The position numbers and the translations under genes are program-made. A stretch of 64,000 nt of DNA. Origin: Trichosphaerium sp. ATCC 40318. Its lineage: Eukaryota; Protista; Tubulinea. Location of the stretch: contig JALMLS010000514.1 in assembly GCA_038496445.1 (NCBI GenBank), positions 62,001-126,000 of the forward strand, written 5' to 3'. Position 1 is the first letter of the stretch. Each line of letters opens with the position of its first letter. Positions 14,412 to 63,784 of this stretch are shown piece after piece. The notes beneath the pieces were generated by a model that was not told where the DNA came from, ran no database searches, and worked only from the letters and a program-made list of their open reading frames with translations.

Positions 14412-16065
14412 ATGCGACATACCTCAACTCTAAAGAATACCTCCAATCAAAGGTACACTTATAAAAACCACGAAACTATCGTAAAATCGCACTTTCTTCT
14501 TGCTTATGCTAACAATAAAATCACGTGATAATTATCTAATTATGCATTGTAGGTGTAATTTACTTAAATTACCTTTGGAGATGATAGTACTCATCATAAG
14601 CTTCTTATTCGACCCTGATCGCTATGAAATAGCAGAAACTTGTCGCTATTTGTCATACATCATTAAGCAATGTGTTGGGTTCATAGACGTTTACGTTTCT
14701 TCAATATACGCAGTGGTTCACGTTTCAACATGTAAGGGTATTCTAAACAACTCCATGATTCATTTTACAGCATCACATGATCGTCACACAATAAACTCAC
14801 ACACCATACTTGCTGGAGCGCAACACCTACATCTAACAGGCGAGGATCTTAAGATAACAAGTGGAAGTACACATATGCTGATAAACAATATAAAAGCCAC
14901 AAACTCAAGAAAGCCTTGCTACATAAACTTTACATCAACAAATATGTACGGGAACAGCATAGCCTTACTTTCTGGTATTAAAACTATCATACTTGAAAAC
15001 TGTATGGGACCATCACTTGATAAAGGACTTAAAAACCTTGGTGGTGTTCATACAATAAACTTACGATATACTCTCGTTACAGATGATACTTTAAAACATT
15101 TGTCAACAGTTCATTGTATTTATCTATCAGAAACGAATATCACAGACAAAGGTATCAAGTTCCTTAAAAATGTACACTCAATAGAGCTTGATGGTACTTC
15201 TGTTACTGATGTTGGGTTATCATACCTATCTAAGGTTCATTCAATTGTACTCGGAGGGTGTAATAACATAACAGATGATGGAGTTAAGTACCTTTCAAAT
15301 GTCCATTCAGTTGATATTGCATTTTGTGAACAAATTACAAATGACGGACTCAAGGCTCTCAGCAAAGTACATACAATTAATATAAGTGGCTGCACTAAAA
15401 TCACAGATGAAGGGATAAAACATTTATCACAAGTAAGAAATCTAGACATCCAAGATAATCCAAGTATTTTGGGATATGGTATCACTTTTCTTAAACACCT
15501 TCATACTATTGATGCTTCATACTGTGGAAATCTGGTTGAGTACAGTGGCTTTCTTGGGGCATATAAAGTCACAGCGCTATCTAACGAATTACTCACGGAT
15601 AGTGACTTAAAATACTTCAAAGATACAACAGAGCTTAATATAACTTACTCTGAAAACATCACCGACGAAGGCTTAAAGTCACTACAAAATGTCAAGATAC
15701 TGGTAATGGCCGAAAATAGTATTACAGATTTCTCAGTGCTGTCAAAAGTACATGAACTAACAATTGAAGGCCTTATTCAAGAGTCCTTATCTCTTCCAGA
15801 CTTTTCGAAAATGGAATCATTACACACTTTACATTTGAACTGTTATTCACTTAATGATGAGAGCGAAGTACACAAGTTGGAGGGAATTCACACTCTTGAT
15901 ATAAGTATCAATATTGCACCTGAAGTATTTGTTGCGTTGAAGAACATTCATACAATCAAGTGTTACATTCCTGGGCTATCTGAAGCTGACTTGAAAAAAC
16001 TTGAAAATGTTCATACTGTTATCAATTGCAACAAACGATACAGAATTAAATCTCATTATCAATAA
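14412..16065 (+). CDS. F-box + leucine-rich repeat (FBXL-like) protein
   Basis: LLKLPLEMIVLIISFL F-box followed by about 24-25-aa LRRs (ITDEGLKxLxxVHxIxLSGC); short first exon 14412-14452 with phase-2 intron, rest is one exon. Confidence 0.88.
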
Positions 16066-17570: not shown

Positions 17571-18969
17571 CTAAAACTCAGGCCAAAAGCCTTCTTCATC
17601 AAACACATCTTCTGCTACTAGATAGTCAACCATCTTCTGTGTAATTTGGGTACACCGATGATTAATACGATATAGGCTTGTTAGACTAACAACACCACTA
17701 TCTGTGATTTGTGAACAGCCTCGTAAGGATAGCTTCTTAACACCAACAAGACGATTTACACCTTTATCAGTGATGTACTTACAATCATCAAGGATTATGA
17801 TTTTAACGCCTATCAAGTAACCAAGGCCTTTATCTGTTATTTTTGTATCCGTGAGAATAATAGTTTGGACACCTGCAAGTGGTGCTAAAGTACTATCGTC
17901 AACACAATCAAGCTTTGAAATGTCAATCACTTTTACTCCTGATAACTTTTGTATTCCATTACTTGTTATAGACTTACAACGATACAAATCAATATGCTGT
18001 ACACCTACTAAACAAGAGAGTGTATCATCATGTAGTTGAGTGCAATTAACAAGCTCTACACACGGTACTCCAGCCAATAGCTTCAATGTGTTGTTTGATA
18101 TTTGTACACAATAGTTTAGTACTATTTTGTTTATAGTAAGTGTTTTTTGATTGTGTGTTAATAAGTACTTAATGCCCTCATCTGATATATTCTTACAATC
18201 AATCAAAGATATAGAGTGTACCTTTGTTAATGCCTTGATACTTTCATCAGTAATTTTACATCCGTTTAACTGTATCTTGTGTATGTAACCTGAAATTGCA
18301 ATAACACCTTTGTCTGTAATACTGTAGCAACGTGATATGTCAATACTGTGAACTCCAGATAGCGCTGCAAGACCTTTATCAGATATATTTGTCCCGGCAA
18401 TATCAACTGTATGGATGTCACAAAGCCCTTGAATCCATTCATCGTTAAAATGCCCATAAGACAAGTCTATTGTATGAACACCCGACAATGATTTAAATCC
18501 ACCACATGTTAGCTTTGAATCAATTGCGATCTTTACCTCCAGATAGTGTACGCCTGTAATATGTTCTAACATAGTATGTGTTACTTCCACTACGTCTTCT
18601 ATCTCTAGGTGGTGTACACCAGAGATATTCTTGATGTCATCTGTAGTTACTGTATACGTATGGTTGTCAACAATTATGTTTGTATTTTTCAGTAGAGGAC
18701 TTTTAGAAAGTCTTGCGAAGTCTTCCTTTGATGTCACAGTAACCTCGTAATATCCCAAATGATTTATAATTATTGTAGAAAAGAATTTACATACAAACGT
18801 TGAAGAAATACGATCATGTTTACCCAAGACAGATAAAATACAAAATAATATTTCTGTAGGTAAACAAACCAACTCGATTGGCCTGCAAAATACGATCAGT
18901 ACAATAAAAGGCAATAAAAATAATTTAAGGTCACGTGTACTTTGTTATATTTGTTAAAGTATGTAGCAT
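17571..18969 (-). CDS. F-box + leucine-rich repeat (FBXL-like) protein, paralogue of 14412..16065
   Basis: LVCLPTEILFCILSVL F-box and LRRs (ISDKGLAALSGVHSIDISRC); same short first exon and phase-2 GTACAC intron as the + strand copy. Confidence 0.88.
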
Positions 18970-21367: not shown

Positions 21368-24353
21368 TTAGCATTGATGATTGTCAACGATTGTTATGAT
21401 AGTTCTGAGAGGGAAACCAGAATCACCCAATCCATTTGATTGGCTGAAAGGTGTTGAAACAATAGTCAGCTCAACTTGATTATTTTGAGAGTCGCAGATA
21501 GGATTTGCATTCAATGGCAATGATACACTTGCAGGTACATTCACGTTACTATCAGAAGAAAAACATCAACAGACAATGAAAACAAAAGTTGAAGCGTACA
21601 CTGATAGTGGTGATCCAACACCGCTTATATCAAACGTGACTGATCCAACTGGACCCACTACAGATGCTTCTAGGGTCAGGCTTGTTGATTGAACATCAGT
21701 CACATTGATAATATTTCCGCTGAACAAAGCCTCTTTCAACACATTTGTTCCATCCAATATTCGAATACTTGGTACTGTTGCGCATGAAGCGTCTCCAGAA
21801 AGTGGAGCTGCAAAAGCGTCCTCTGGTACAGAGCCATCTGTAACCCCTTTGACAAGTTTGGTGACAGTAAATTGACGGACTTCTTCAAGTTCCTCTAAAA
21901 CAAAATTAGAGATTTTCATAACAAAAAATACAAGTGTAGTACGTTGTGTAAGACCAGGCTCATTGACGCCTGGCATGTTACCAAGAGAAGGTAGATTCTC
22001 ATACCAGAACCTATCACCATCTCTAAGACGTCTGAATTGATCAATAAGCACTCTTGATGTTGTGCGACCCAAGTTTGAACCAGGTTCTTTCTTTTCAGCC
22101 ATAAAACCGAACCAAGGATCCAAAGCAGTCATCTTTTGGTATATCTTGAATAGTTTTAGAGGGTACCATTAGGTTCATTACTCAATGTGACGTACATCTT
22201 TGGTGTTAGGAGCCAAGTTTGGAACATCAGGAAATTGCTCAAGCCATGATTCGAAACAAGCCAAATCATCAACTGCAGATAATGGATTTGAATCACAGTT
22301 GTCATACAAACTCTTTGTTCCAGGTGCCAATGGATTCCAGTTCTTGTATACTGTCTCAAAGTCAGGTATACCATTATCACGTGCACGAGCCATATTCAAG
22401 GATACAATATCTAAAAATAGCGAACTTTAGTGGATGGTTACTCACGAAGGAGAAAAAGAAATTGTTGTACCAACACCAACAGTGAAGTCCGTTGGAATAT
22501 TAAAGTTTCTCAAAATATCTGATACCATGTGATCTATTTGCTCTATTGGAGTATACATGAGGGCACGTACAATACTATCAAAACTTCCAGCTGCACAAAC
22601 CTTTGAAAACAACAGTGAGTAAAACGAGAAAATATAAAGAAAAAATAGTACCATTCTCAACGGGAAAACAGGTCCTCCGTTTGATGTTCCTTGGATCAGA
22701 ACACCTCCCCAACCGAGAGTACTATCGAGGTTACCACACTTGTCGTAAGTAGGTGTCAAATCAAGGACAGTAGAATGTCCGTAACGTCCTGAAGCTGCAC
22801 TAAAGAGAGTTGCGATACGTGGATCAACAGAAGGTTTGTATCCACTCCATTTTCTTTGAAACAGGTTAGTTTTGGCGCTCAAATGTCAGTAATGTCGTAC
22901 CCAAGGTATCTTGCCATTTGATAGTCTCCAACAAGTTTAGGCAACCACTCGTTGTAAACAATATGTTGATACTGAGCAATGTTTATTGCTCTTGCTTTTT
23001 GGAACAACTGTTCATCAGTCCAAGAAGGATGCTGTAAAACATCGTTAGATAAATACCAAGTGTTTTAAAGCTGGTAAACTAACCTTCACTTGTTGTTCTT
23101 TTGCGATTCTGTTGTGTTCAAGGTACATGACATGATGTACTGAGTTTACACCTTGTACCGAAGAACTTCTTTCATCACCGCTAGCAAAAACTGTATCTAG
23201 AGGGTCATCGTCATGCGTTCCTGCATCATTCGGAGTCTCTGAATAAAAAGTAAATACATACTCTAAAAGGTTGAGAACGTGCGTGTAGTTTGGATGTTTG
23301 GAAGAGTGTCAAATATCTTCCTTCTCTCTGGATTTTCAGTACCAGTTCTCGGATTATCAGGATTATAAGAAGATGTCCACTCGTGATCTTCAATAATCAA
23401 CTCTCCTCCACTATCTGAACAGTATTAGAAGGATACAAAGGCAAAGATAGAACAGTTGTAACAACAAAATGCATCACATGCACTTGGCGAACAGAATAGT
23501 GCGTACTTGTTCTGAAGGCATCCATGTAAGTTTTGTTGTGCCAGTAAACAGTCGAAAGGTCAAGGAAATGTGTCTGTTGGTTTATTGGTTCTTTAACGTC
23601 ATTCACAAATGTTACGAATGATTTACCAATACCAACAGGTGTTTTATTCCTTATATTGGTCTTTCTTCTGAATGGAGGGAAAGCTAAAACACAAAAAACC
23701 AAATAAATAATTTGTTGAGATACGCTTGAGAGAAAAACTAGGCGCACGGAGACAAAAATAATAAAACGTTAACGAAATAATTCAATAATACGCACGAAGG
23801 AAAAGAAAAGGATCGTCGTCACGCAAAATTAACGTATCCAATGTATCATTACGAGAAGGGTCAGAAATTACATCAAATGACCTAGTCTAAAGAAAGAGTT
23901 AGTTTGAAAACCATCACGTGATTTCCCAAAATAAAACGTGGACAAAACCAAAAAAACCGTCGAAAATTAATCAAAATATTAACGTACGAGACTTAAATCG
24001 TGCATAATGAACTGCCCAAAGAACGTGTGAAAAAGGGACAATCTTTTTATTGTCTTTTGTGCTCTAGGGTTTTGTGGCTTCCCTAGAAGCGCTAGGGTTA
24101 CATCTCTTACTCTAGGACGTCCTTCAAGTATCGCTGTCTCGAAAGGAGGTGATGTATCGTTGTAAGCTGCTCCTTCACGCGTACGATAGAATATAGTTTT
24201 CGGCAGGCCGATTTCTGGGTTCGTGAGGCTATTACAGAAGCCATCTAACGATCTTACTGTTAGGTCTGCTCCTGTACACGTAGATGAAACGCATGAAGCG
24301 AATAGTGCTACGATTGCTAGTATCAATACACTAGGAGACGTGTTGTTACGCAT
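21368..24353 (-). CDS. Secreted animal-type heme peroxidase, copy 2 (inverted paralogue of 9462..12562)
   Basis: Same motifs and intron positions as copy 1; long stretches near-identical at nucleotide level. Confidence 0.93.
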
Positions 24354-30932: not shown

Positions 30933-31894
30933 AGAAGAAAGAACGTCACGTGATGACTACCGTACTGAATGAGTATTTACTTTTACTCCCTATACATACT
31001 ATAGTATCCACTCTCCATTGTAAACCTTGTAAATTCTCCTTTAATGTCTGGTTTATTGCACGGGATCGTTTTTGCTGTTTTTTACTTCTTTTTTTTATCC
31101 TTGCTTTGTGTTTTGTTTTGAAAAGAGATACACGGTTTGAAGTCACATCTTTATAGAAGTAAGTATTTCGTATTAATTAATTAATTGCTTACGCCATGGG
31201 TTCTGTTTAGACATATAGTATTTCTCAAATAGTCGCCTTGTAGTGAGAGAATTCTTGTTTTGAATAAAAGTTAACTTGATTTTCGCAACAAGAGAAAACC
31301 AAAAAAAAAAAATTTGTTGTTGTACTTTATGTCTTTCCATCACGTGATTAAAATTATCTGTACAAACATCATAGTATGTTTTATTCGTATAAGCCACAGA
31401 TAAAATAGTGTCATTGTCTAAAAACTGCATAATGAGGTCTAAAAGCTCTAAGGGAAGCTCTAGATGAAAAAGACATTTAGTACAAGAATTAAATAAAAAA
31501 AAAATTAAGGCACAAATACGCATACCTGCGAAGAAACACTTCTCACTTGCGTTTCTAGTCTTCATATACGTTATTTTTGGTCTTGTCGTTTTTATTGGTT
31601 GTAAACACGTGTTCCCAAGTGGTTCGTGGTGTGTAAGAACGTATTGACATATCCTTAGCCAAGGGTTACATTCCTTTCCTCAAAAATGCATTTCGAGAAG
31701 AAAAAAAAACGATGCCTACCTTTTGCACGCCATCTCACTCGAATCAAGAAGAGTGTAATGCTTAATGGTTCTTGTTATTGTGAGCTCTCTTTTCAAACGC
31801 TCTAGAGTCTAAAAAGAAAGGTGAGAAAACTAGTAATTAAACAAAAAGTAATTTCTACAATTACCTTTCTCAAAACCTTCTCTTCGCTTTCCAT
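29652..31894 (-). CDS. F-box fused to degenerate heterotrimeric G-protein alpha domain (start uncertain)
   Basis: FAELPLELLDLIMQFLD F-box, then colinear G-alpha landmarks: RSRAINQTLKE..TIVCIG, FDRITSQGFIPTKSD, IVFCVTLADY..KLNRSVHEF, TPFNTIFP, WIFKATKDIMITNLLSIHGF. Confidence 0.75.
30899..30930. repeat. Poly(A) homopolymer of about 30 nt (intronic poly-T on the sense strand)
   Basis: Seen directly in the sequence. Confidence 0.9.
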
Positions 31895-35313: not shown

Positions 35314-38300
35314 TTACACCATTTCCCTTGTCTTTCTATCATCACGTCCTCTGCACTTAAGTATTATCCAACCTGTCACCGCACAAACAACTATCAACAA
35401 GCCATATGCCAGCATGACATAAGAGTATATGAGTGAGGTGTTGATAAAGTCTTTTTGAAGGTCAACAAGTTTATCAACATAATGCTCTAGAAAACATGTA
35501 AGTAAAATACAAGAAACAAAAAATTTGTTTTTAGCGATAACGCACGTGTTCTATTTACGAAATTATCTACTACAGTTTCAGATACTGTAGGAATAGCTGG
35601 GAGAGAGAATGTATCAGGTAATACAGTATCAGGAATCTTAGCAATGAGAGGGCCAATACCACTAACGAGAAAAAAGTAAGAATAAAAACATTTTTTGTTG
35701 TAATCTAGTACCGCATTACTGTAATGACATCGTCAAGGTATATGAGACAAGAAATGAGAGCTGATAGTATATCCGCTACAACAGATGTGATGAATTTACT
35801 AACCTCATCTGTCAAATCACTTAACAAAAAGTATTAGGATTGTGTTTGCTACTGAAATACTTTTGAGAAATACCTTCGTGTATTCTCTATTTTATCGGCA
35901 AGATTATTAAGAGCTACTCCCGGAGTTTGTAGTGCATTTCTCATATCAGTTTTAGTTTCTTCTAGAGCCTAAATAGTATGTTAGCTTAAAAAGCAAGTAA
36001 TGTTTGGAGAAATACAAAAAAAAAGTTCAAGCTAACGATTTTACACACGTGATAGAAACTGTTCAAGCAACAAAAGCACACTGCTAGCTGTTAAATTACT
36101 TACGGTAGTGAAGTTCTTTGCAAAATATTATTTGTGTCATTGATAAGAGCATTTGTCTCAGCCAAAATTTCATTTCCAAAGTTTCTGACATCAGTTTCAA
36201 CCCAAGTATTTAGTTCAGCTGCAGCTAGATTTACACCGACAAGGTAAAGATGGAATGCAATGATAGTCAAGATAGCAATCAAAGTGATGACAATAGCTGG
36301 TTTCCAAATCATAAACTCACAGCACCAATACGTTGGTTCTTCTTCTGGTGTTCGGCTAAAAAAAACAGAACTTAGTTCCGAATACAAAAACTCGTCACGT
36401 GATACTTACTTTGGTTTTCTGTTTATCTTGAGGATAGACTCACGTTTTGAGAACCATATTATTATCATACGAGATTGATAAAGGAAATACCAAGTCACCA
36501 GTATGGCGATTAGAATAAATCCGACTATACCATAAGATAAATACTTGACAATGTTCACAGCGTTATCATATGGTTCCCAGTTGATTCTATCGCAGAATAC
36601 AATAGGTGCATATTCAGGTACTGGAAGCGTTACAAAGGTGGTGTTCTGAACATCAGCTCTAAAAATCAATAAGACAGAGAACCACTCAACTCTTGCTCGT
36701 CAAAACGTACATGATTTCTTCAACTTCAGTGGTAAGAAGATCGCTCAGTAATCCTTTTACAAAGCTAGACAATGCTTCCTCAATAGAGTCTGAAGAAGGT
36801 AATACAAGACCCTAAGGTACATTACTTAAGAGCCAAAGAGTAGAACAAAGACATACGGATCCTTCAACTGTTGGTGCAAAAGTAGTTGCTTCGCTGGAAT
36901 TGAAGCCACCGTTGGAAAGAGAAGTAGCGTTGGTAGTGACGTTTGTAAGCATGTTAACGTCTGTGGAGATGTTATCAAGTGCTGAAGTGGCGTTTCTAAG
37001 TATAGCTTCCTTCTCAGCATCAGTGAGTTGCTCTAAAGCTCGCTTAAACCCGAAAGTATTTTTTATAGTATTCGCTGCTCCTTCAACTTCATTTAGGGCA
37101 GTACTCAAAGCATCCGTTCTAGGTTAACTTGTAAGCGTTTTATAGTAATAAACTATACTCACAGTGGTCCGAATAAGTTTGCTACAGAGTCATAAGCGCA
37201 TAATAGAACTCTCAGTTTTCCAGAAATGACAAAGATTGCAACCTATAAAAGTTCAGTAAAGCAAAGTTAAAATAAACAATTCACGTACATCCACCGCGAC
37301 ATACACACTTTCCAGCGCCAGGTTCAGACTCGATGAAAGCCCTTGCTGAAGTGCATCATTTACAAACGTATTTGAAGTCTCTGCTAATGTCACGTGGACA
37401 TTAGCAACCTCTGTAACGACATCTTGTAGGTCAATGCATTGGTTCGTTATGAAATCTTTAATAATTTCTGAAGATCCAGTAAAGTTTTGTAGAAACAAGA
37501 GGCTCGTTACTCTAAGAGGAATAGCCACGTGAGTAAAATATATAAATATTCAAATCGTCCGTACAATGTTCCTATGAGTACAGCTATATATAGATGCCAG
37601 AACATCCTGCAAGCGTTTGTTTTTCTTCCGAGAAATTTCGGGTTGTACGTTGAACCAAAAGATTTATCAACGTAAATATAATCCTTTTCTTTCTCCGTAG
37701 TCTGTACAGTTCTCGCATAAACTCTTTCATCGTCAGAATGTTCTTCGTAAGCTGTATGAGTAGGAACTCTTGGTACTGGCTGGTAAAAATACACGTGAGC
37801 GCCGCGTGACGGACAGAAAGTTGTATTTTAAAATTCACACCTTCGGCTTTTTTTTAGGCTTCACGCGTTCCAGAGGTATGTCCGCTCCATCGTATGATCG
37901 TGTTTCAGCGTGAGACTATCATTAAAAGAATTAGTGGGCTGTTCACAAACCCACAAGATATGTAAAAAAACTAACCGTCACAACGCCTTTTGTTGAAGTT
38001 TTCTTCTTCCCTATGCCAAGCATTTTACCTATCGCGCTCTTTTTCTGTGATTTAACACCCTTTCTCTCGATAAGTGGTGAAGTAGCTACGTCGGCTGAAT
38101 AACCAGGTATCTCTGGTAGAGACGCGTTGACATCTTGAGAGAGTCCACTAGAAAGCTTGTAAACACCCAAAGAGTAATTTATCCTTTCGGTTTTTTGTAA
38201 AACACGTGAATCATTTCTTTACCTCTTTCGTAACCCCTCCTCTTCAGAATCTGAAGATGATTTACTCTCATCGCTTGAACTATCTGTATCTTCACTTTTC

Positions 38301-38696
38301 TTATCTCCGCCATCATCAAGAGGCGTTTTAGGTAATCTAGAAACGACAAATAAGAGTTAAATCACTTGTGTTTTACTTTGAGCCGAAAAAACCAAAAAAA
38401 ATCTTGAGAAAATCTTACTCTCTTGGCTGCGCCGCTTGCTCCTTTTCATCTCGTTTAGGTAATAACTTGCTTAGTCCTAAATAACCACAATTAAATTAAC
38501 CTATTTTGATAAATACCGTTGCGTACGCATCTGGTCTACTGGGTTCTCTGTATGAGACACTGTTTCTCTATTCTACAAAAACAAATTAAGAACAAAAAAC
38601 GTGCAAATACCGTTTAAGGCTGCTTGTTACCTGGTACTCTGCATTTCCTTCAGTTGTCCAGCTTTCGCTCTCATTTTGCTCGTTGGGTTCTGTCAT
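35314..38696 (-). CDS. PRM1: Prm1-like multi-pass membrane protein (fungal plasma-membrane fusion protein family)
   Basis: Spliced product has FLGRKTNACRMFWHLYIAVLIGTL, C-x21-N-x30-FVI-x8-C, LPVPEYAPIVFCD, TM helices and ISCLI, with a C-terminal TM. Colinear with the recalled fungal Prm1 consensus. Acidic low-complexity N-terminus. Confidence 0.72.
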
Positions 38697-41646: not shown

Positions 41647-43004
41647 TTACTTTTGTCGCCTTTTTTTCCATTTTATTTTTCTTGGGTTTCCTCTTCCATC
41701 AAAGCTCAATACTTCAATGTCTTTGGCGTGTTTGGTTGTCATTATATTATGTTTCTTTTCTAATTTAGCCAACAAGTGATCTAAAGATTTTTTATGCTTA
41801 AGAGCCTGTGCTAAAGCCTAGGAAAAATTAATTGAATATATTGCAAAAAAAAAACCAAGTTGATCAAAAGTACGCACTTCGTATGACTCTTTACTTTCTT
41901 GTTGCATCTCTGCAAGTTCATCTGCTGTGTATTTACCAGGATTTACAAGAAGAGATCCTACAAAGAGATTTTAGTCTCAAACGGCGTTGATAGAAAGTAG
42001 TAAAAAAAAAAAAAAAATCTTTGAACTTGCAAAAATACTTGGTTGAACAACGATCAAATGCAAGTAGTTTAACGTAAGCGGTAATAATAATATATGTTTA
42101 TCTCATGCGTAATATAAATTTATAAATTAACCTATTTCAGCCCAGTTGTGTTGGGTTTTATCCAATAAAAAAAAACTTAGTTTTTTTTGAAATCAAATTG
42201 TACCATTAGTTATTTGATCGTATGTAGGCCTATTATATGCGCGTCCCATCAATGCAATAGGTGTATTGAAATCTTTTTCAGCATCATACGTCTGTCTGTC
42301 ATCCTCAGAATCTACAAAAAACAAAGAAAACGTCAAAATCAAATTTTTTTGTTGATTTTGCATTGATTTCGATTACAGCTGTCTTTTCTTAGGTTCAAAC
42401 TATTCTCATTTGCTTTAAAAATATTCGTACCTACGAATACTACATGTGTTTTGGCTATCTCTGCAGCTGACTTTTCAGCAATCATGTGTTTTGTTTCACG
42501 TATTTTTTCAATCCGCTAAAGGCGTTTTGAGCGTTGTTTATTTATTAGGCGGGGTAATAGCGTACCTTTATGACTCGCTGGCGAACAGTACGGACGAGGT
42601 TAATATCGTAGGAATTCAATTTCACTTTTTCTTCGTCGTTGTACTCTAATTTATCTGGTAGCTCGTAATGCAGTCCTCCCTTTTAACGGTAGTAAGAATT
42701 AACCATTTTCTTGATTTAATAATACTTACAACGCGTCTAGAGTTTATCATATGGTGGTAGAACTCATCCAAGTTTCTTAGAGCCACCGATGTGAGGATTT
42801 TGCGCTTTTTCTCTCTTTTGTCATGCTATGTATCAAATTAGCGCCAACGCCATCTAACGCCATAAAGATACGTACTTCAAGCTTTTTACGTTTCTTAAAG
42901 CCTCTTCTTCTCTCAAGTGGTCCAAGACCCTTTCTACTCTCTATCTGGGAACGTTCTTTATATCTACTACGCGCCCGTTCAGTTCTATTGCGGAAGCTTG
43001 ACAT
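41647..43004 (-). CDS. UTP11: U3 snoRNP-associated protein 11 (SSU processome)
   Basis: MSSFRN..YKERSQIESRKGLGPLE..RNLDEFYHHMINSRRVGGLH..KLNSYD.. and C-terminal KIKWKKRRQK*, all typical of Utp11. Confidence 0.85.
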
Positions 43005-43075
43005 TCTTGAGTTTAATGTATTTTGTAGATCTTCACTTAAACGCTTTGTCCACATGTCAAACACAACATGTTTAA

Positions 43076-43124
43076 AGAATCTCATGCCCCGTAAGCACGC
43101 GCCTTACCATTGGGCCAACGCGGC
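43076..43124 (-). pseudogene. 3'-truncated tRNA-Arg(ACG) copy
   Basis: Identical to the tRNA 5' portion through the variable loop; lacks the T loop (B box) and 3' acceptor strand. Confidence 0.9.
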
Positions 43125-43997: not shown

Positions 43998-45937
43998 ATG
44001 CGCTTTTTTTGTGCTTTATTGTTTTTTGTTGTTGTCAGTAGCGCCGTATTGAAGCCGTTTGAAGGACAGAGTGTTATAAAAGTATCCTCAAGCAACAGCT
44101 CATCAACTGCGTCTCTTTTGGATATTATAATGAAGGAGAACATTGATGTGTGGTCTCCTACGCTTAACCACGTGCGAGGTACCTCAACAAACAATATATT
44201 TTCGTAATTGATCTTTCTAGTCACTCAAAAATCACGTGATATGCTACAATCGATGGGGTTCGAGACAAGCACAATAATCGCTGATTTACAAAAGGCGATA
44301 GATGATTTTGAAGCAGATAAGATTCACGTGCGCCCAATTATTTTGTTAGCTGACAAGTGAATTAACTAATTCACGTACTGTTTTAGAGTAGGGAAAATGC
44401 TGATGACTTCTTTGACGCTTATCATCCTTTTGATGAGATCATAATTTGGTTAGAGAAAATGGCCGGACAGTTCAGCGAGATTGCAAACTTGGAACGTGTT
44501 GGTACTGTACTGCAATGTTGCCTCCGGTTGATTTACTACTAGGACAATCCCATGAAAACCGCGTTATCGAGAGCATAGTCATACACGGAACGGATCAACC
44601 GTCTGACGTTCCAGGCACGTCTTATTAACTCGCGTTTTTTTTAAGGATGTATCGAACTGATAGTGGTTTTTTTCAGCGATTGTATTTACTGGTGGACAAC
44701 ATGCTCGCGAGTGGATATCACCAATAACTACTCTTTATATCATTAAAGAACTTTGTGAGGGATATGGTAACGATCCAGTAATCACAAACCTTGTTGACAG
44801 TGTACGTTGTCACTTTTGAAAAAAAATAGCCAATCACGTCCACAAGGACCCTTTGAGTAAATCAAAAAACGTATTTTCCCTTTAAATATGGAACGCTAGT
44901 TTTTGTGTGCTAAACATAATGCACGTGTCCAACCTCCATAGATTTAGTTCAAGAAAAAACAAAAAAAACTTATGCTTTTACTAAACGCTTCTAGATTCAA
45001 TGGGTTATCATTCCAGTGGCAAACCCTGATGGTTATAGCTATACATGGAATTCATCATCTACTAGACTTTGGAGAAAGAACAGAGAACCTACTTCTAACC
45101 CAAGCTGTTTTGGTAAGTTTTTTCACCGTTTATTTGTTTTCGGCTTTGAAAATCTTACCTTGTCTTAAGGTGTTGATATCAATCGTAACTGGCCATACAG
45201 ATGGAATACAGGCGGATCTAGCAGCAATCCTTGCTCTGATACCTACCACGGTAATTAATTATTCCGCAGTTTTGAGCAAAACTTTGTATCGTGTTGACAC
45301 GTGCCAGTTTTTTTTCATGGCTGTTATAGCCGTGTTAAACAGTTGACTGTCAATCAACTGACTTTAAAGTCGATTCAAAATTTACTTGTGTTTTAAAAAA
45401 ACGTGATCATTCTATTACAATCTAAAACTATCTTTAGGACCAAGCGGTGGATCTACAAATGAGATTAAAGCGTTAACTGATATGATAAAAAGTAGACCAA
45501 ATACAAGAGGTTATATTGACTTTCACGCATACTCTCAGCTTTACATGAGCCCATGGGGTTACTCACGTACATACCCTAATGACTACAGTGCAATGAAAAC
45601 ATCAATGGATCAATCTGTTGCAGCTATAAGAACAGTACACGGTAAAATCTACAGAGCAGGTACAACAAAAGTTGTGAAACTAACGAAAAATTACCACTTG
45701 TTTGTTCAGTTACTTACTTTCTACATAACAGGGAGCATCGCTAATATCATCTATGTCGCTTCTGGTGGATCTGTTGATTGGACTTATGGTGAACTTGGTA
45801 TCGTATACTCATTTGGTATTGAGCTCCGTGATACCGGTACTTACGGTTTCCTTCTACCTGCGAATCAAATTATACCTCAAGGAGAAGAAATTATGCCTTC
45901 AGTTATAAGTTTCGCTCAAGATATTCTTGAAGAATAA
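43998..45937 (+). CDS. Zinc carboxypeptidase, M14A family, with propeptide
   Basis: Signal peptide; GQHAREW, NPDGY, WRKNR, DINRNW, DFHAYSQ, IYVASGGSVDW, ELRDTG; one GC-AG intron at 44615. Confidence 0.95.
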
Positions 45938-47649: not shown

Positions 47650-48141
47650 ACTACGTTTCAAAAACAGAATAAATTGCTTCAAAAAAATATTAAGCCACAT
47701 GGTTTTTGCCTTATGTTTTGGCTGAAGCAAGTTCCTGCTTATTGCCCGATCTGGTTAAGGCAACATTAGCTTTGTAAGGCATATACGTACCTACCATAAC
47801 TCCTGAAGGGTAACAAAATAAACAAGTATGAATGTAGTAACATTATTTACCTTAGTTTAGGTACTTGGAACTAACCGTGTTGCGTTTCGTTATTGTATTT
47901 AGATATCAAACACGCCATCAGTAGTTTGATAGCGTTTAATCCTCTTGTACGTACAAACATAACATTTAAGACTAAAACCATTCGTACACGACTATTTTAA
48001 TGAAAACCAAGGTTCTAGTTCGTTTTAACAGCAAATCTACTTTAGAAATAACACAATTTGGTGTACTTTCATCTTGGCGAGTAACAAGCTGTAACGGCCC
48101 TAAAAATCGTATTAGTTGTTTAGTTTGGGGACTGCGGCGTG

Positions 48142-48891
48142 ATGGAAAAAAAAGTCAAGAAAGAGAACAAGTTATCTTTGACTTTACTTGATATTCCACG
48201 TGAACTTCAAAAGTATATTTGCACCTTCAATGTTGAAGCTTTCACAAAATTCCATACACTTTCAAAAAGAGCAGCAATCAATACACATTTTGATGAACAA
48301 TTACAAAGAGATGGAAAATGGATAAAATGGTATAAAAGTGGGAAGGTACAAAAGTATATTTATGCAAAGAATGGACTGTGTACAGGGTTTTATGAGAGTG
48401 GTAAAATAGAAGCACAATTTATGCAAGTCAATGGTAAGCACAATGGTGAACAAAAAATGTGGTATGAAACTGGAGAACTTAAGTCACAAAGTATGTGGGT
48501 TGATGATAAAGCTTGTGGTGAAAGTAAAACATGGTACAAGAATGGTCAACTTGCAGTACAATGTACGCTGCTTGATGATAAACACATTGGTGAGCAAACA
48601 GAATGGTATGAAAATGGACAAATTGAAGCAACAAGCACATGGATTGATAATAAACAACATGGTGAAACTAAGACATGGTACAAGAGTGGTAAACTTGAGG
48701 TGCAAGCCGTTTATGTTAAAGGTAAACAACATGGTGAATGTAAAGAGTGGTATGAAAATGGACAAATTAAGTCACAAAGCATGTGGGTTGATGGGAAGCA
48801 ACACGGTGAACAAAAAGAGTGGTATGAAAATGGACAACTTAAGTCACAAAGCATGTGGGTTGAGGGCAAACAAAGCGTGACCCATGATTAG
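48142..48891 (+). CDS. F-box-like + MORN-variant (YwqK-like) repeat protein, intronless
   Basis: LLDIPRELQKYICTF followed by 24-aa repeats HGExKxWYENGQL. Confidence 0.85.
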   Translation: MEKKVKKENKLSLTLLDIPRELQKYICTFNVEAFTKFHTLSKRAAINTHFDEQLQRDGKWIKWYKSGKVQKYIYAKNGLCTGFYESGKIEAQFMQVNGKHNGEQKMWYETGELKSQSMWVDDKACGESKTWYKNGQLAVQCTLLDDKHIGEQTEWYENGQIEATSTWIDNKQHGETKTWYKSGKLEVQAVYVKGKQHGECKEWYENGQIKSQSMWVDGKQHGEQKEWYENGQLKSQSMWVEGKQSVTHD

Positions 48892-61147: not shown

Positions 61148-62777
61148 TTATTTACTTTCTTTGTTAGGGATATATTCCTTCAATTGACCGTTTTCATCCC
61201 ACTCCTTTACATCGCCTTGTGGCTTGTTGTCTTTATAATTTCTAAGTGATTTCATATGCCCGTTTTTATGATACTGTATTTGTTTTCCGTCTTGTTTATC
61301 TTCCTTGAAGTGACTTTGTAACCATAACTGATCATCATCATACCACTCTTTGTAAACACCTTCTCTCTTGTCATCTTTGAAGTAGCAATGTATACGTAAG
61401 CGTCCATTCTCACGCCACCACTTGAATTCACCATCTTTTTTTCCTTCCTTAAAATGGCAAATTGAATTTATTTGGCCGTTCTCATAAAAATCTTTTGCTT
61501 CTCCATCAAGCTGATTATTCTTATATTTATGTTGACATTTTAAGTTTCCGCCTTCATACCATGCTTTATCTTGATCTCTATGTCCTTCATTGAGGAACAG
61601 TTGTACTTTTATCTGTGCATTGTCATACCATTCTTTTTCTTCACCATGCCTCTTGTTGTTTTTATAGGTAACCAGGTGAACTAATTGACTGTTTTCATTA
61701 TATGATTTGCAAATGCCTTCTTTATTACCATGTTTGTAAAAGAAAATAGATCTTAATTGACCATTATCATACCACTCTTTAGTTACACCTTCTTTCTTGC
61801 CATTTTTGAACTGACATTGTTGCATTAATTGACCATTATCATACCAGTGCTTTTTGTTCACCTTCTTTCTTGTCATTTTTGAACTGACCTTCTTGCATTA
61901 ATTGACCATTATCATACCATTGTTTGTATTCACCTTCTTTCTTGCCATTTTTGAACTGACAGTGTTGCATTAATTGACCGTTATCATACCATTGTTTGTA
62001 TTCACCTTCCTTCTTGTCATTTTTGAACTGACAGTGTTGCATTAATTGACCATTATCATACCATTGTTTGTATTCACCATCTTTCTTACCATCTATCAAA
62101 TGAGTTTGTGCGCGAGACTTACCATTCTCGTGCCACTGTTTTGCTAGGCCTTCAATCTTATCGTTCTTGTAATAAAAAAGATGACTCATTGTACCACTCT
62201 CATACCAATATTCGCCAACACCTTGCTTCTTCCCATCCGTACAATAGCACTTTTGTGAAAGAACACCATTCTTGTGCCAGAGCTTGTATTCCCCTTGCAC
62301 TCTTTTATGATTATCCAAGTAGTATTGGGCTGATACCTGACCATTTTCATAAAACTTTTCTATTAATCCTTTCTTCTGTCCACTCCGATAAAGTCGCTCT
62401 TTAACGTTTTTCGTGTTTTCGTATAGAACCTTTACAAAAAAAAAACGTTTCAGTTGAAAACACGTGATTGACAATAAACCTAAAAATGTCGTACTTCTTC
62501 AATGTCAGGTGTAAAATTACCACTGACAAGATGGTCAGTGTAGTAGCATCGTGAAGGATAATACCACAGCATTGTTCTTCTTGAGGTATGTACGCAGCTG
62601 CTTTGTGATGAACCATACAACGGCATTATTGTAGGTTTGTGAAATGATTGTCTTATCGCTGCTTTGGGCATCTTAAATCTTTTGTACATCGTAGGATGAA
62701 CGTTAACCATAGTATATCCTAGTTAGCTTATCAATATAATCTTATCTTTGTTGTTTAATGTACGTACGTCGTAACAT
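61148..62777 (-). CDS. MORN-variant (YwqK-like) repeat protein with mitochondrial-type presequence; one frameshift at about 61853
   Basis: Many 24-aa repeats KKEGEYKQWYDNGQL; N-terminus MLRRYTMVNVHPTMYKRFKMPKAAIRQSF; two 5' introns. Confidence 0.8.
61754..62080. repeat. Near-identical 72-bp coding tandem repeats
   Basis: TAATTGACC(A/G)TTATCATACCA recurs at 61754, 61826, 61899, 61971 and 62043. Confidence 0.9.
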
Positions 62778-63088: not shown

Positions 63089-63784
63089 ATGTTACGAATA
63101 AGTGTTAACCCACGCCCTATGTGCAGGAGCGGTAGAGCGAATGCCAAATTAACGAAGTTTGTACGGCAAATCCCTTCTAGAGGCCGTTCTACGCTGTCAA
63201 GTGTTAGAAAATCGAATATCGTAGCTAATTCACGTCAATTACGCTTCAATACAACATTATTCTCTTCAATGCGACTGTATTGCACCGCAACGCCTAAAAC
63301 AGAAGACGTACCTACGCCACCTACAACAGGCGAGCATAAAACGTACCATCCAAACGGAAAACTGTCACTTCACTGTTTTTACGAGAACGGACGCTTACAC
63401 GGTGAATACAAGCAATATAGAGACGATGGTAATATCCAGATGCATTGTCATTACTTTGAAGGAGAAAGAAAAGGAGAAGTAAAGAAATGGTACAAAAACG
63501 GTCAGATGTTTCTTCATGGTATAAATGTTTGGTCTAATAAGGAGGGACAGTTTACAAAATGGTTTAAAGATGGTAAAATGAACAATAAAGTCATTTTCAA
63601 GAACGGGTCATTGAGACAAGTGAAGACATTTGGCGTTAAAGGCAAAATGCAGTCTCTTGGTAATTTTGAAAATGGTCAAGCTAATGGAGAGTTTAAACTA
63701 TTTGATGATGATGGTGAATTGAAGCAACATACAATATATGAAGGTGGTAAACCAGTAAAGCAAATACCTATAAACAAAGAATAA
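63089..63784 (+). CDS. MORN-variant (YwqK-like) repeat protein with mitochondrial-type presequence, intronless
   Basis: About 65-aa Arg/Ser-rich acid-free N-terminus ending MRLYCTA, then repeats GEHKTYHPNGKL / GEVKKWYKNGQM. Confidence 0.88.
   Translation: MLRISVNPRPMCRSGRANAKLTKFVRQIPSRGRSTLSSVRKSNIVANSRQLRFNTTLFSSMRLYCTATPKTEDVPTPPTTGEHKTYHPNGKLSLHCFYENGRLHGEYKQYRDDGNIQMHCHYFEGERKGEVKKWYKNGQMFLHGINVWSNKEGQFTKWFKDGKMNNKVIFKNGSLRQVKTFGVKGKMQSLGNFENGQANGEFKLFDDDGELKQHTIYEGGKPVKQIPINKE

Follow-up and report, generated by a model that had tools for sequence, protein, structure and literature searches.

A highly divergent PRM1-family gene in the amoeba Trichosphaerium, predicted to encode a four-pass surface protein with a possible role in membrane merger

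Prm1 is a four-pass membrane protein that aids the merger of mating fungal cells. Among the cell-fusion factors of fungi it is the most widely conserved, and its family is generally regarded as restricted to fungi. The locus described here raises the question of whether a member of the same family resides in a non-fungal protist and, if so, what it might do there. The locus lies in a 64,000-nucleotide stretch of DNA from Trichosphaerium sp. ATCC 40318 (contig JALMLS010000514.1, positions 62,001 to 126,000 of the forward strand), the whole of which is referred to here as the window. A reading of the window made from its letters alone, referred to as the original prediction, had proposed a homologue of fungal Prm1 at 35314-38696; the location proved exact, and the gene lies on the minus strand. 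Taken as a whole, the evidence makes it probable that this is a resident amoebozoan gene for a highly divergent four-pass protein of the PRM1 family, with fusion helper as its putative role.

The gene model was obtained from a six-frame read and then refined with spliced contigs from public runs and with a transcript contig, L001. Its coding sequence extends from an ATG at 38696, with an in-frame stop directly upstream, to a stop codon at 35316-35314. It comprises 17 exons and 16 introns and holds 801 codons in the window model, in which one restored base is read as X. All 16 introns are of the GT-AG type, and all splice sites are intact in the window copy. Fifteen introns measure 44-82 nucleotides (nt) and one measures 135 nt; intron 2 (38526-38477) and intron 13 (36103-35969) both fall slightly off the naive hand-splice. 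The transcript contig reaches from at least 38716, in the 5′ untranslated region, to 35269, in the 3′ untranslated region.

Transcript support for this model is extensive. Spliced RNA-derived contigs confirm the joints of 14 of the 16 introns (four public runs from three studies, 95-100 % identity to the window), and a single 2441-nt contig (run X5) covers the entire coding sequence. A search with exon 12 recovered P0001, an 801-amino-acid (aa) protein from L001, which is a 2477-nt Joint Genome Institute (JGI) transcript contig from sample 3300016894. Exon by exon, L001 is 98-100 % identical to the window; the two differ in 8 of 801 codons (six synonymous and two non-synonymous differences), and P0001 equals the window product except for two residues and the indel. 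All variants in the four runs together amount to 21 synonymous versus 3 non-synonymous differences between alleles or strains, one of the three resting on low depth close to where a contig stops, and the ratio of non-synonymous to synonymous polymorphism (pN/pS) is about 0.04. This bias and the spliced transcripts indicate protein-level constraint on a gene whose transcripts are correctly spliced. The Prm1-like gene is resident, intron-rich, expressed as one mRNA, and under purifying selection; from the wealth of introns, the original prediction had likewise favoured a resident gene over contamination. The RNA-derived contigs carry no information on expression level. A tblastn search with P0001 found no second Prm1-like copy within the window.

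Two sites in the transcript contigs deserve separate mention. In a low-depth contig of run X2 (depth 3.6), a change at position 37746 would on its own convert codon 189 (GAA) to a stop codon. It sits 31 letters from the end of that contig and could reflect an error or a diverged copy. At the second site, every RNA-derived contig carries an extra T or C (mRNA sense) behind plus-strand position 36121 relative to the window. The transcripts spell this site as ATT TTT, ATT TTC, or ATC TTT, all of which encode Ile-Phe, and the window reads ATT TT-. The three allelic spellings at 36121-36125 suggest several haplotypes, through polyploidy or a mixture of strains, together with an error in the assembly consensus.

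The encoded protein was divided into membrane spans and loops by hydropathy and charge analysis. Residues 1-237 form a charged, low-complexity cytoplasmic N-terminus rich in Ser, Lys, and Glu, which is followed by four transmembrane helices (TM1-TM4). Basic residues that precede TM1 and follow TM2 and TM4 mark the cytoplasmic flanks, and these flanks together with the hydrophobic helices place both termini inside the cell and two large loops outside it. Extracellular loop 1 spans 248 aa, is acidic and predicted to be helical, and contains six NxS/T sequons and three cysteines (Cys274, Cys338, and Cys493). Extracellular loop 2 spans 169 aa, is likewise acidic and predicted to be helical, and contains four NxS/T sequons and a single cysteine, Cys694, whose codon carries one synonymous allele difference. 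A basic cytoplasmic loop of 38 aa connects TM2 and TM3, and a basic tail of 14 aa (KCRGRDDRKTREMV) follows TM4. Internal duplication of the two protein halves was not significant. On these sequence features, the protein is predicted to be a four-pass, surface-type glycoprotein, with glycosylation probable from the sequons.

Assignment to the PRM1 family comes from two independent kinds of evidence. The precomputed Pfam match of P0001 is PF27758 PRM1 (Pfam 38.1), at E <= 1e-5. In a language-model feature search of the ESM Atlas with the membrane part of the protein, three PRM1 clusters ranked first (scores of 0.93, 0.92, and 0.91; 214 shared features out of 256), and eight of the ten best family-bearing matches share family or clan with the best. 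The C-terminal half alone (residues 556-801) again placed PRM1 first, at 0.92 with 201 shared features. When the PRM1 clusters are set aside, the next matches are Prominin and Tweety, at 0.82-0.85 with 154-172 features, and these serve as leads only. The Pfam-A models of Prominin (PF05478), Tweety (PF04906), and DC-STAMP found no match in P0001 at E <= 10, and a Pfam-A scan of ten single exons, run with a library version that lacks PF27758, likewise gave no Prominin, Tweety, or DC-STAMP match. A sequence search of the PDB returned nothing meaningful, and no solved Prominin or TTYH chain was matched.

Searches with single sequences returned the protein itself and no relative. With exon 12 (82 aa) as the query, phmmer was run exhaustively over 1.84 billion representatives and recovered only P0001, its three other matches being hydrophobic or repeat noise. 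A word-index search with residues 225-801, at E <= 0.01 and at E <= 10, returned the protein alone from a list of 8000 candidates that is out of reach for distant relatives. JGI metagenome contigs, when scanned, yielded no relative either, and the 90 % cluster of the product has one member, from one contig, among about 15 billion public proteins. The link to PRM1 is thus visible only at the profile level. Membership in the PRM1 family (PF27758), as a highly divergent protein, is supported by this evidence.

The layout of the protein resembles that of its fungal counterparts. Saccharomyces cerevisiae Prm1p, Neurospora crassa PRM-1, and Cryptococcus Prm1 each have four transmembrane helices and two cytoplasmic termini, as does the amoeba protein. 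In Cryptococcus Prm1, the helices lie at residues 67-87, 352-371, 433-455, and 647-688 and are separated by loops of about 265, 62, and 192 aa; the corresponding loops of 248, 38, and 169 aa in the amoeba protein are close to these. Loop 1 of yeast Prm1 contains a conserved, non-spanning hydrophobic domain with acidic residues E104 and D112 and the adjoining Cys-120. The best-conserved part of loop 2 contains Cys-545, and the two cysteines form a functional disulfide-linked dimer. Fungal Prm1 is further marked by its location where cells touch, by unfused or lysing pairs upon its loss, and by expression at a mating or fusion-competent stage. The amoeba protein likewise has a Cys-bearing hydrophobic segment in each extracellular loop and two acidic residues in that of loop 1, a likeness at the level of pattern. 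Its loop-1 segment is a candidate counterpart of the yeast domain by Cys-120, and its loop-2 segment is a candidate counterpart of the stretch around Cys-545, each by pattern only. Unlike fungal Prm1, the protein belongs to an amoebozoan host, carries a charged and disordered N-terminal extension of 237 aa, is encoded by a gene with 16 introns, and has a sequence too divergent for single-sequence searches.

Prominin and TTYH proteins have five transmembrane helices and an extracellular N-terminus. The amoeba protein resembles them as a multi-pass protein with two long extracellular loops, predicted to be helical and probably glycosylated, but differs from them in having four transmembrane helices, a long cytoplasmic N-terminus, and no profile or sequence match to either. 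Several protein-level observations of the original prediction were borne out: the peptides quoted from the hand-spliced protein all occur in the translation in the order given, and the product has four strongly hydrophobic spans as well as four cysteines on the extracellular side (274, 338, 493, and 694). The original prediction also proposed a motif-by-motif colinearity with fungal Prm1. The proposed homology to Prm1 agrees with the PF27758 match, the leading PRM1 clusters, and the topology. A better match to Prominin or Tweety, named in advance as grounds for rejecting that homology, was not seen, as profiles were silent at E <= 10 and feature scores were lower.

The statistics of the window fit the amoebozoan Trichosphaerium as host rather than a fungus, in line with the original prediction. 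The window has a guanine-cytosine (GC) content of 0.35-0.39 and many short introns; in the published draft genome of this marine amoeba, introns number 8.7 per gene and average 75 nt, and the GC content is 37.69 % (PMC10521059). The same study (Tekle et al. 2023, Table 2) lists ‘PRM1-a’ (TRSP15481) and HAP2 among the plasmogamy genes of Trichosphaerium sp. Expression of PRM1-a was confined to medium cells, where three single-cell transcriptomes (‘medium cell’) contained it; it appears in that study in a table of presence and expression, without a gene model, topology, or evolutionary discussion (PMC10521059). PRM1-a is probably identical with the present gene or with a copy of it. The present gene occurs in three runs from a single 2023 study, which would seem to echo the three medium-cell transcriptomes, a link that we infer.

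Other published accounts place PRM1 outside the Amoebozoa. A 2017 inventory detected it only in opisthokonts and not in Amoebozoa, and a 2023 study of the origins of fungal gene families classified Prm1 as a fungal novelty whose domains are at least 99 % fungal (PMC10406608). In reviews, PRM1 figures as a factor of yeast and as a protein that might take the place of HAP2 where HAP2 is absent, as in HAP2-less fungi (PMC11603280). Fungi lack HAP2, whereas HAP2 and PRM1 are reported to co-exist in Trichosphaerium (PMC10521059). Since a PRM1 had already been tabulated for Trichosphaerium, the novelty of the present gene is modest, and the original prediction had foreseen that prior documentation would lower it.

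Several points weigh against reading the locus as an intact PRM1-family gene with a part in fusion. The only formal sequence test of family membership is the precomputed PF27758 match of P0001, and feature-search scores of 0.9 or more are reached by 4-10 % of shuffled proteins. The cysteine and acidic positions were matched to fungal Prm1 through published descriptions rather than by residue alignment. The single-sequence AlphaFold2 model has a predicted local distance difference test (pLDDT) score of 41.7 and is unusable; an Atlas fold search with that model returned unrelated families at template-modelling scores below 0.3, which are meaningless. No fusion of cells was seen in cultures of Trichosphaerium (PMC10521059), which makes a fusion role an extrapolation from fungi. 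Finally, the window copy as assembled is frameshifted and meets a stop codon as exon 13 ends. The gene and the peptides of the original prediction are real, but the raw window reads through to that stop unless the missing base is restored. A window copy without a base that every transcript contig has could be a decaying pseudogene or allele, with the transcripts derived from other, intact copies. This explanation is unlikely, since apart from the missing base only the 8 codon differences noted above, most of them synonymous, separate the window copy from L001, its splice sites are all intact, and errors of consensus or polishing are typical of a T-run at a T/C-variable position. With the gap in such a run, where alleles vary, and the remainder of the gene undamaged, the missing base is probably an error of the assembly consensus.

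Two further explanations concern what the protein is and where the gene came from. The protein might belong to a wider and ancient multi-pass class that includes Prominin, Tweety/TTYH, and PRM1-like proteins without being a true orthologue of Prm1, and might serve general membrane shaping (protrusions, vesicle release, or the plasmotomy of cells with many nuclei) instead of fusing cells with one another. The secondary feature matches to Prominin and Tweety, the extreme divergence apparent when the exon-12 phmmer search and two word-index searches return only the protein itself, and the lack of observed fusion in the amoeba (PMC10521059) are all compatible with such a class. It is nevertheless quite unlikely, because it is the PRM1-specific profile that matches at E <= 1e-5, with the Prominin, Tweety, and DC-STAMP models and the solved Prominin and TTYH chains silent, because PRM1 clusters score clearly higher (0.91-0.93 with more than 200 features, against 154-172), and because four helices with the N-terminus inside do not fit five-pass Prominin and TTYH. 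Horizontal transfer from a fungus to the amoeba or an ancestor, followed by the filling of the gene with host-type introns, would leave the locus with no bearing on a pre-fungal origin of PRM1. Many transferred genes are reported in the host genome, where about 40 % of those of viral origin have introns (PMC10521059); the 2017 inventory did not detect PRM1 in other Amoebozoa, and the exon-12 phmmer, word-index, and JGI metagenome searches found no relative in other protists. Against transfer stand the 16 host-like introns and the host-like GC content, and a divergence too deep for single-sequence searches excludes a recent event; an ancient transfer and vertical descent are indistinguishable without a tree. 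Transfer is considered very unlikely, and a resident, highly divergent PRM1-family gene remains the preferred reading.

Of the neighbours named in the original prediction, an animal haem peroxidase, MORN_2 genes, and a weak Utp11 match were recovered, and the window also contains F-box and leucine-rich-repeat genes (Table 1). Of the two long LRR_6-type open reading frames, one carries an N-terminal F-box. The MORN_2 genes, described as ‘MORN repeat variant’ genes, form a small dispersed family within 16 kb.

Table 1. Positions of the Prm1-like gene, its protein features, and neighbouring genes in the window (exons and protein features are listed for the minus-strand gene)
Feature	Position	Strand	Details
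Whole coding sequence	35314..38696	-	801 codons; splice model, spliced contigs, L001 alignment
Exons 1-7	38696-38631, 38572-38527, 38476-38419, 38336-38223, 38147-37976, 37915-37841, 37779-37565	-	cytoplasmic N-terminus and start of TM1
Exons 8-12	37511-37289, 37242-37163, 37118-36857, 36811-36711, 36658-36410	-	rest of TM1, extracellular loop 1, TM2, first part of short basic cytoplasmic loop
Exons 13-17	36355-36104, 35968-35874, 35819-35712, 35661-35546, 35486-35314	-	end of cytoplasmic loop, TM3, extracellular loop 2, TM4, C-tail
One-base deficit	36121..36122	-	codon 632 (Phe), exon 13; all RNA-derived contigs versus window
TM1	37478..37599	-	aa 238-260; split by intron 7; preceded by basic stretch KFLGRKTNACR
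Loop-1 hydrophobic segment	37198..37327	-	aa 311-338; split by intron 8; E316, D323, ends in Cys338
TM2	36472..36546	-	aa 509-533; hydropathy
TM3	36232..36303	-	aa 572-595; hydropathy
Loop-2 hydrophobic segment	35714..35791	-	aa 680-705; Cys694 at its centre
TM4	35359..35427	-	aa 765-787; followed by basic tail KCRGRDDRKTREMV
LRR_6-type open reading frame, long, intron-poor	14500-16062	+	one of the two with N-terminal F-box
LRR_6-type open reading frame, long, intron-poor	17574-18914	-	one of the two with N-terminal F-box
Animal haem peroxidase, C-terminal part, exon	21569-22132	-	PF03098, E 3e-13
F-box exon	31176-31565	-	Pfam
Utp11, weak match	42780-43085	-	Pfam
Zinc carboxypeptidase M14 exon	45482-45934	+	PF00246, E 1e-24
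MORN_2 gene	48139-48888	+	Pfam, E 1e-14 to 1e-40 across the four genes
MORN_2 gene	61151-61876	-	as above
MORN_2 gene	61842-62474	-	as above
MORN_2 gene	63089-63781	+	as above

A working model for the protein can be drawn from its architecture and from the fungal system. Like its fungal counterparts, the Prm1-like protein probably sits at the cell surface as a dimer, possibly disulfide-linked through its loop cysteines and joined by the hydrophobic loop segments. At apposed plasma membranes, this dimer would bias events toward orderly bilayer merger over lysis, acting as an accessory or stabilising factor and not as a fusogen. The role of helper is favoured over that of fusogen because HAP2 is reported in the same amoeba. 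The long, disordered, charged N-terminus rich in Ser and Lys could provide a handle for targeting or regulation. By analogy with fungi, a fusion-related role is possible, held at somewhat below even confidence, and a general role in membrane shaping or integrity in large multinucleate cells may take most of the remaining probability.

The evolutionary implications reach further than the gene itself. PRM1 may not be a fungal invention: Amoebozoa and opisthokonts could have inherited it from their common ancestor, in which it would have served membrane merger or protection from lysis alongside the HAP2 fusogen, with Fungi keeping PRM1 after the loss of HAP2 and most other lineages losing PRM1. 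PRM1 might even be the four-pass branch of an ancient superfamily that also includes Prominin and TTYH. This history is a tentative one and appears doubtful, though conceivable. The weight of the finding is limited by the PRM1 entry for Trichosphaerium already in print and by the inferential nature of the evolutionary and functional readings. If the gene is a bona fide member, the family would have its origin, or would at any rate extend, outside the Fungi, and the report of HAP2 alongside it would argue that Prm1 is a fusion accessory rather than a replacement fusogen. Such a gene would also be a concrete candidate in two matters that lack an explanation in amoebae, their plasmogamy and their multinucleate biology.

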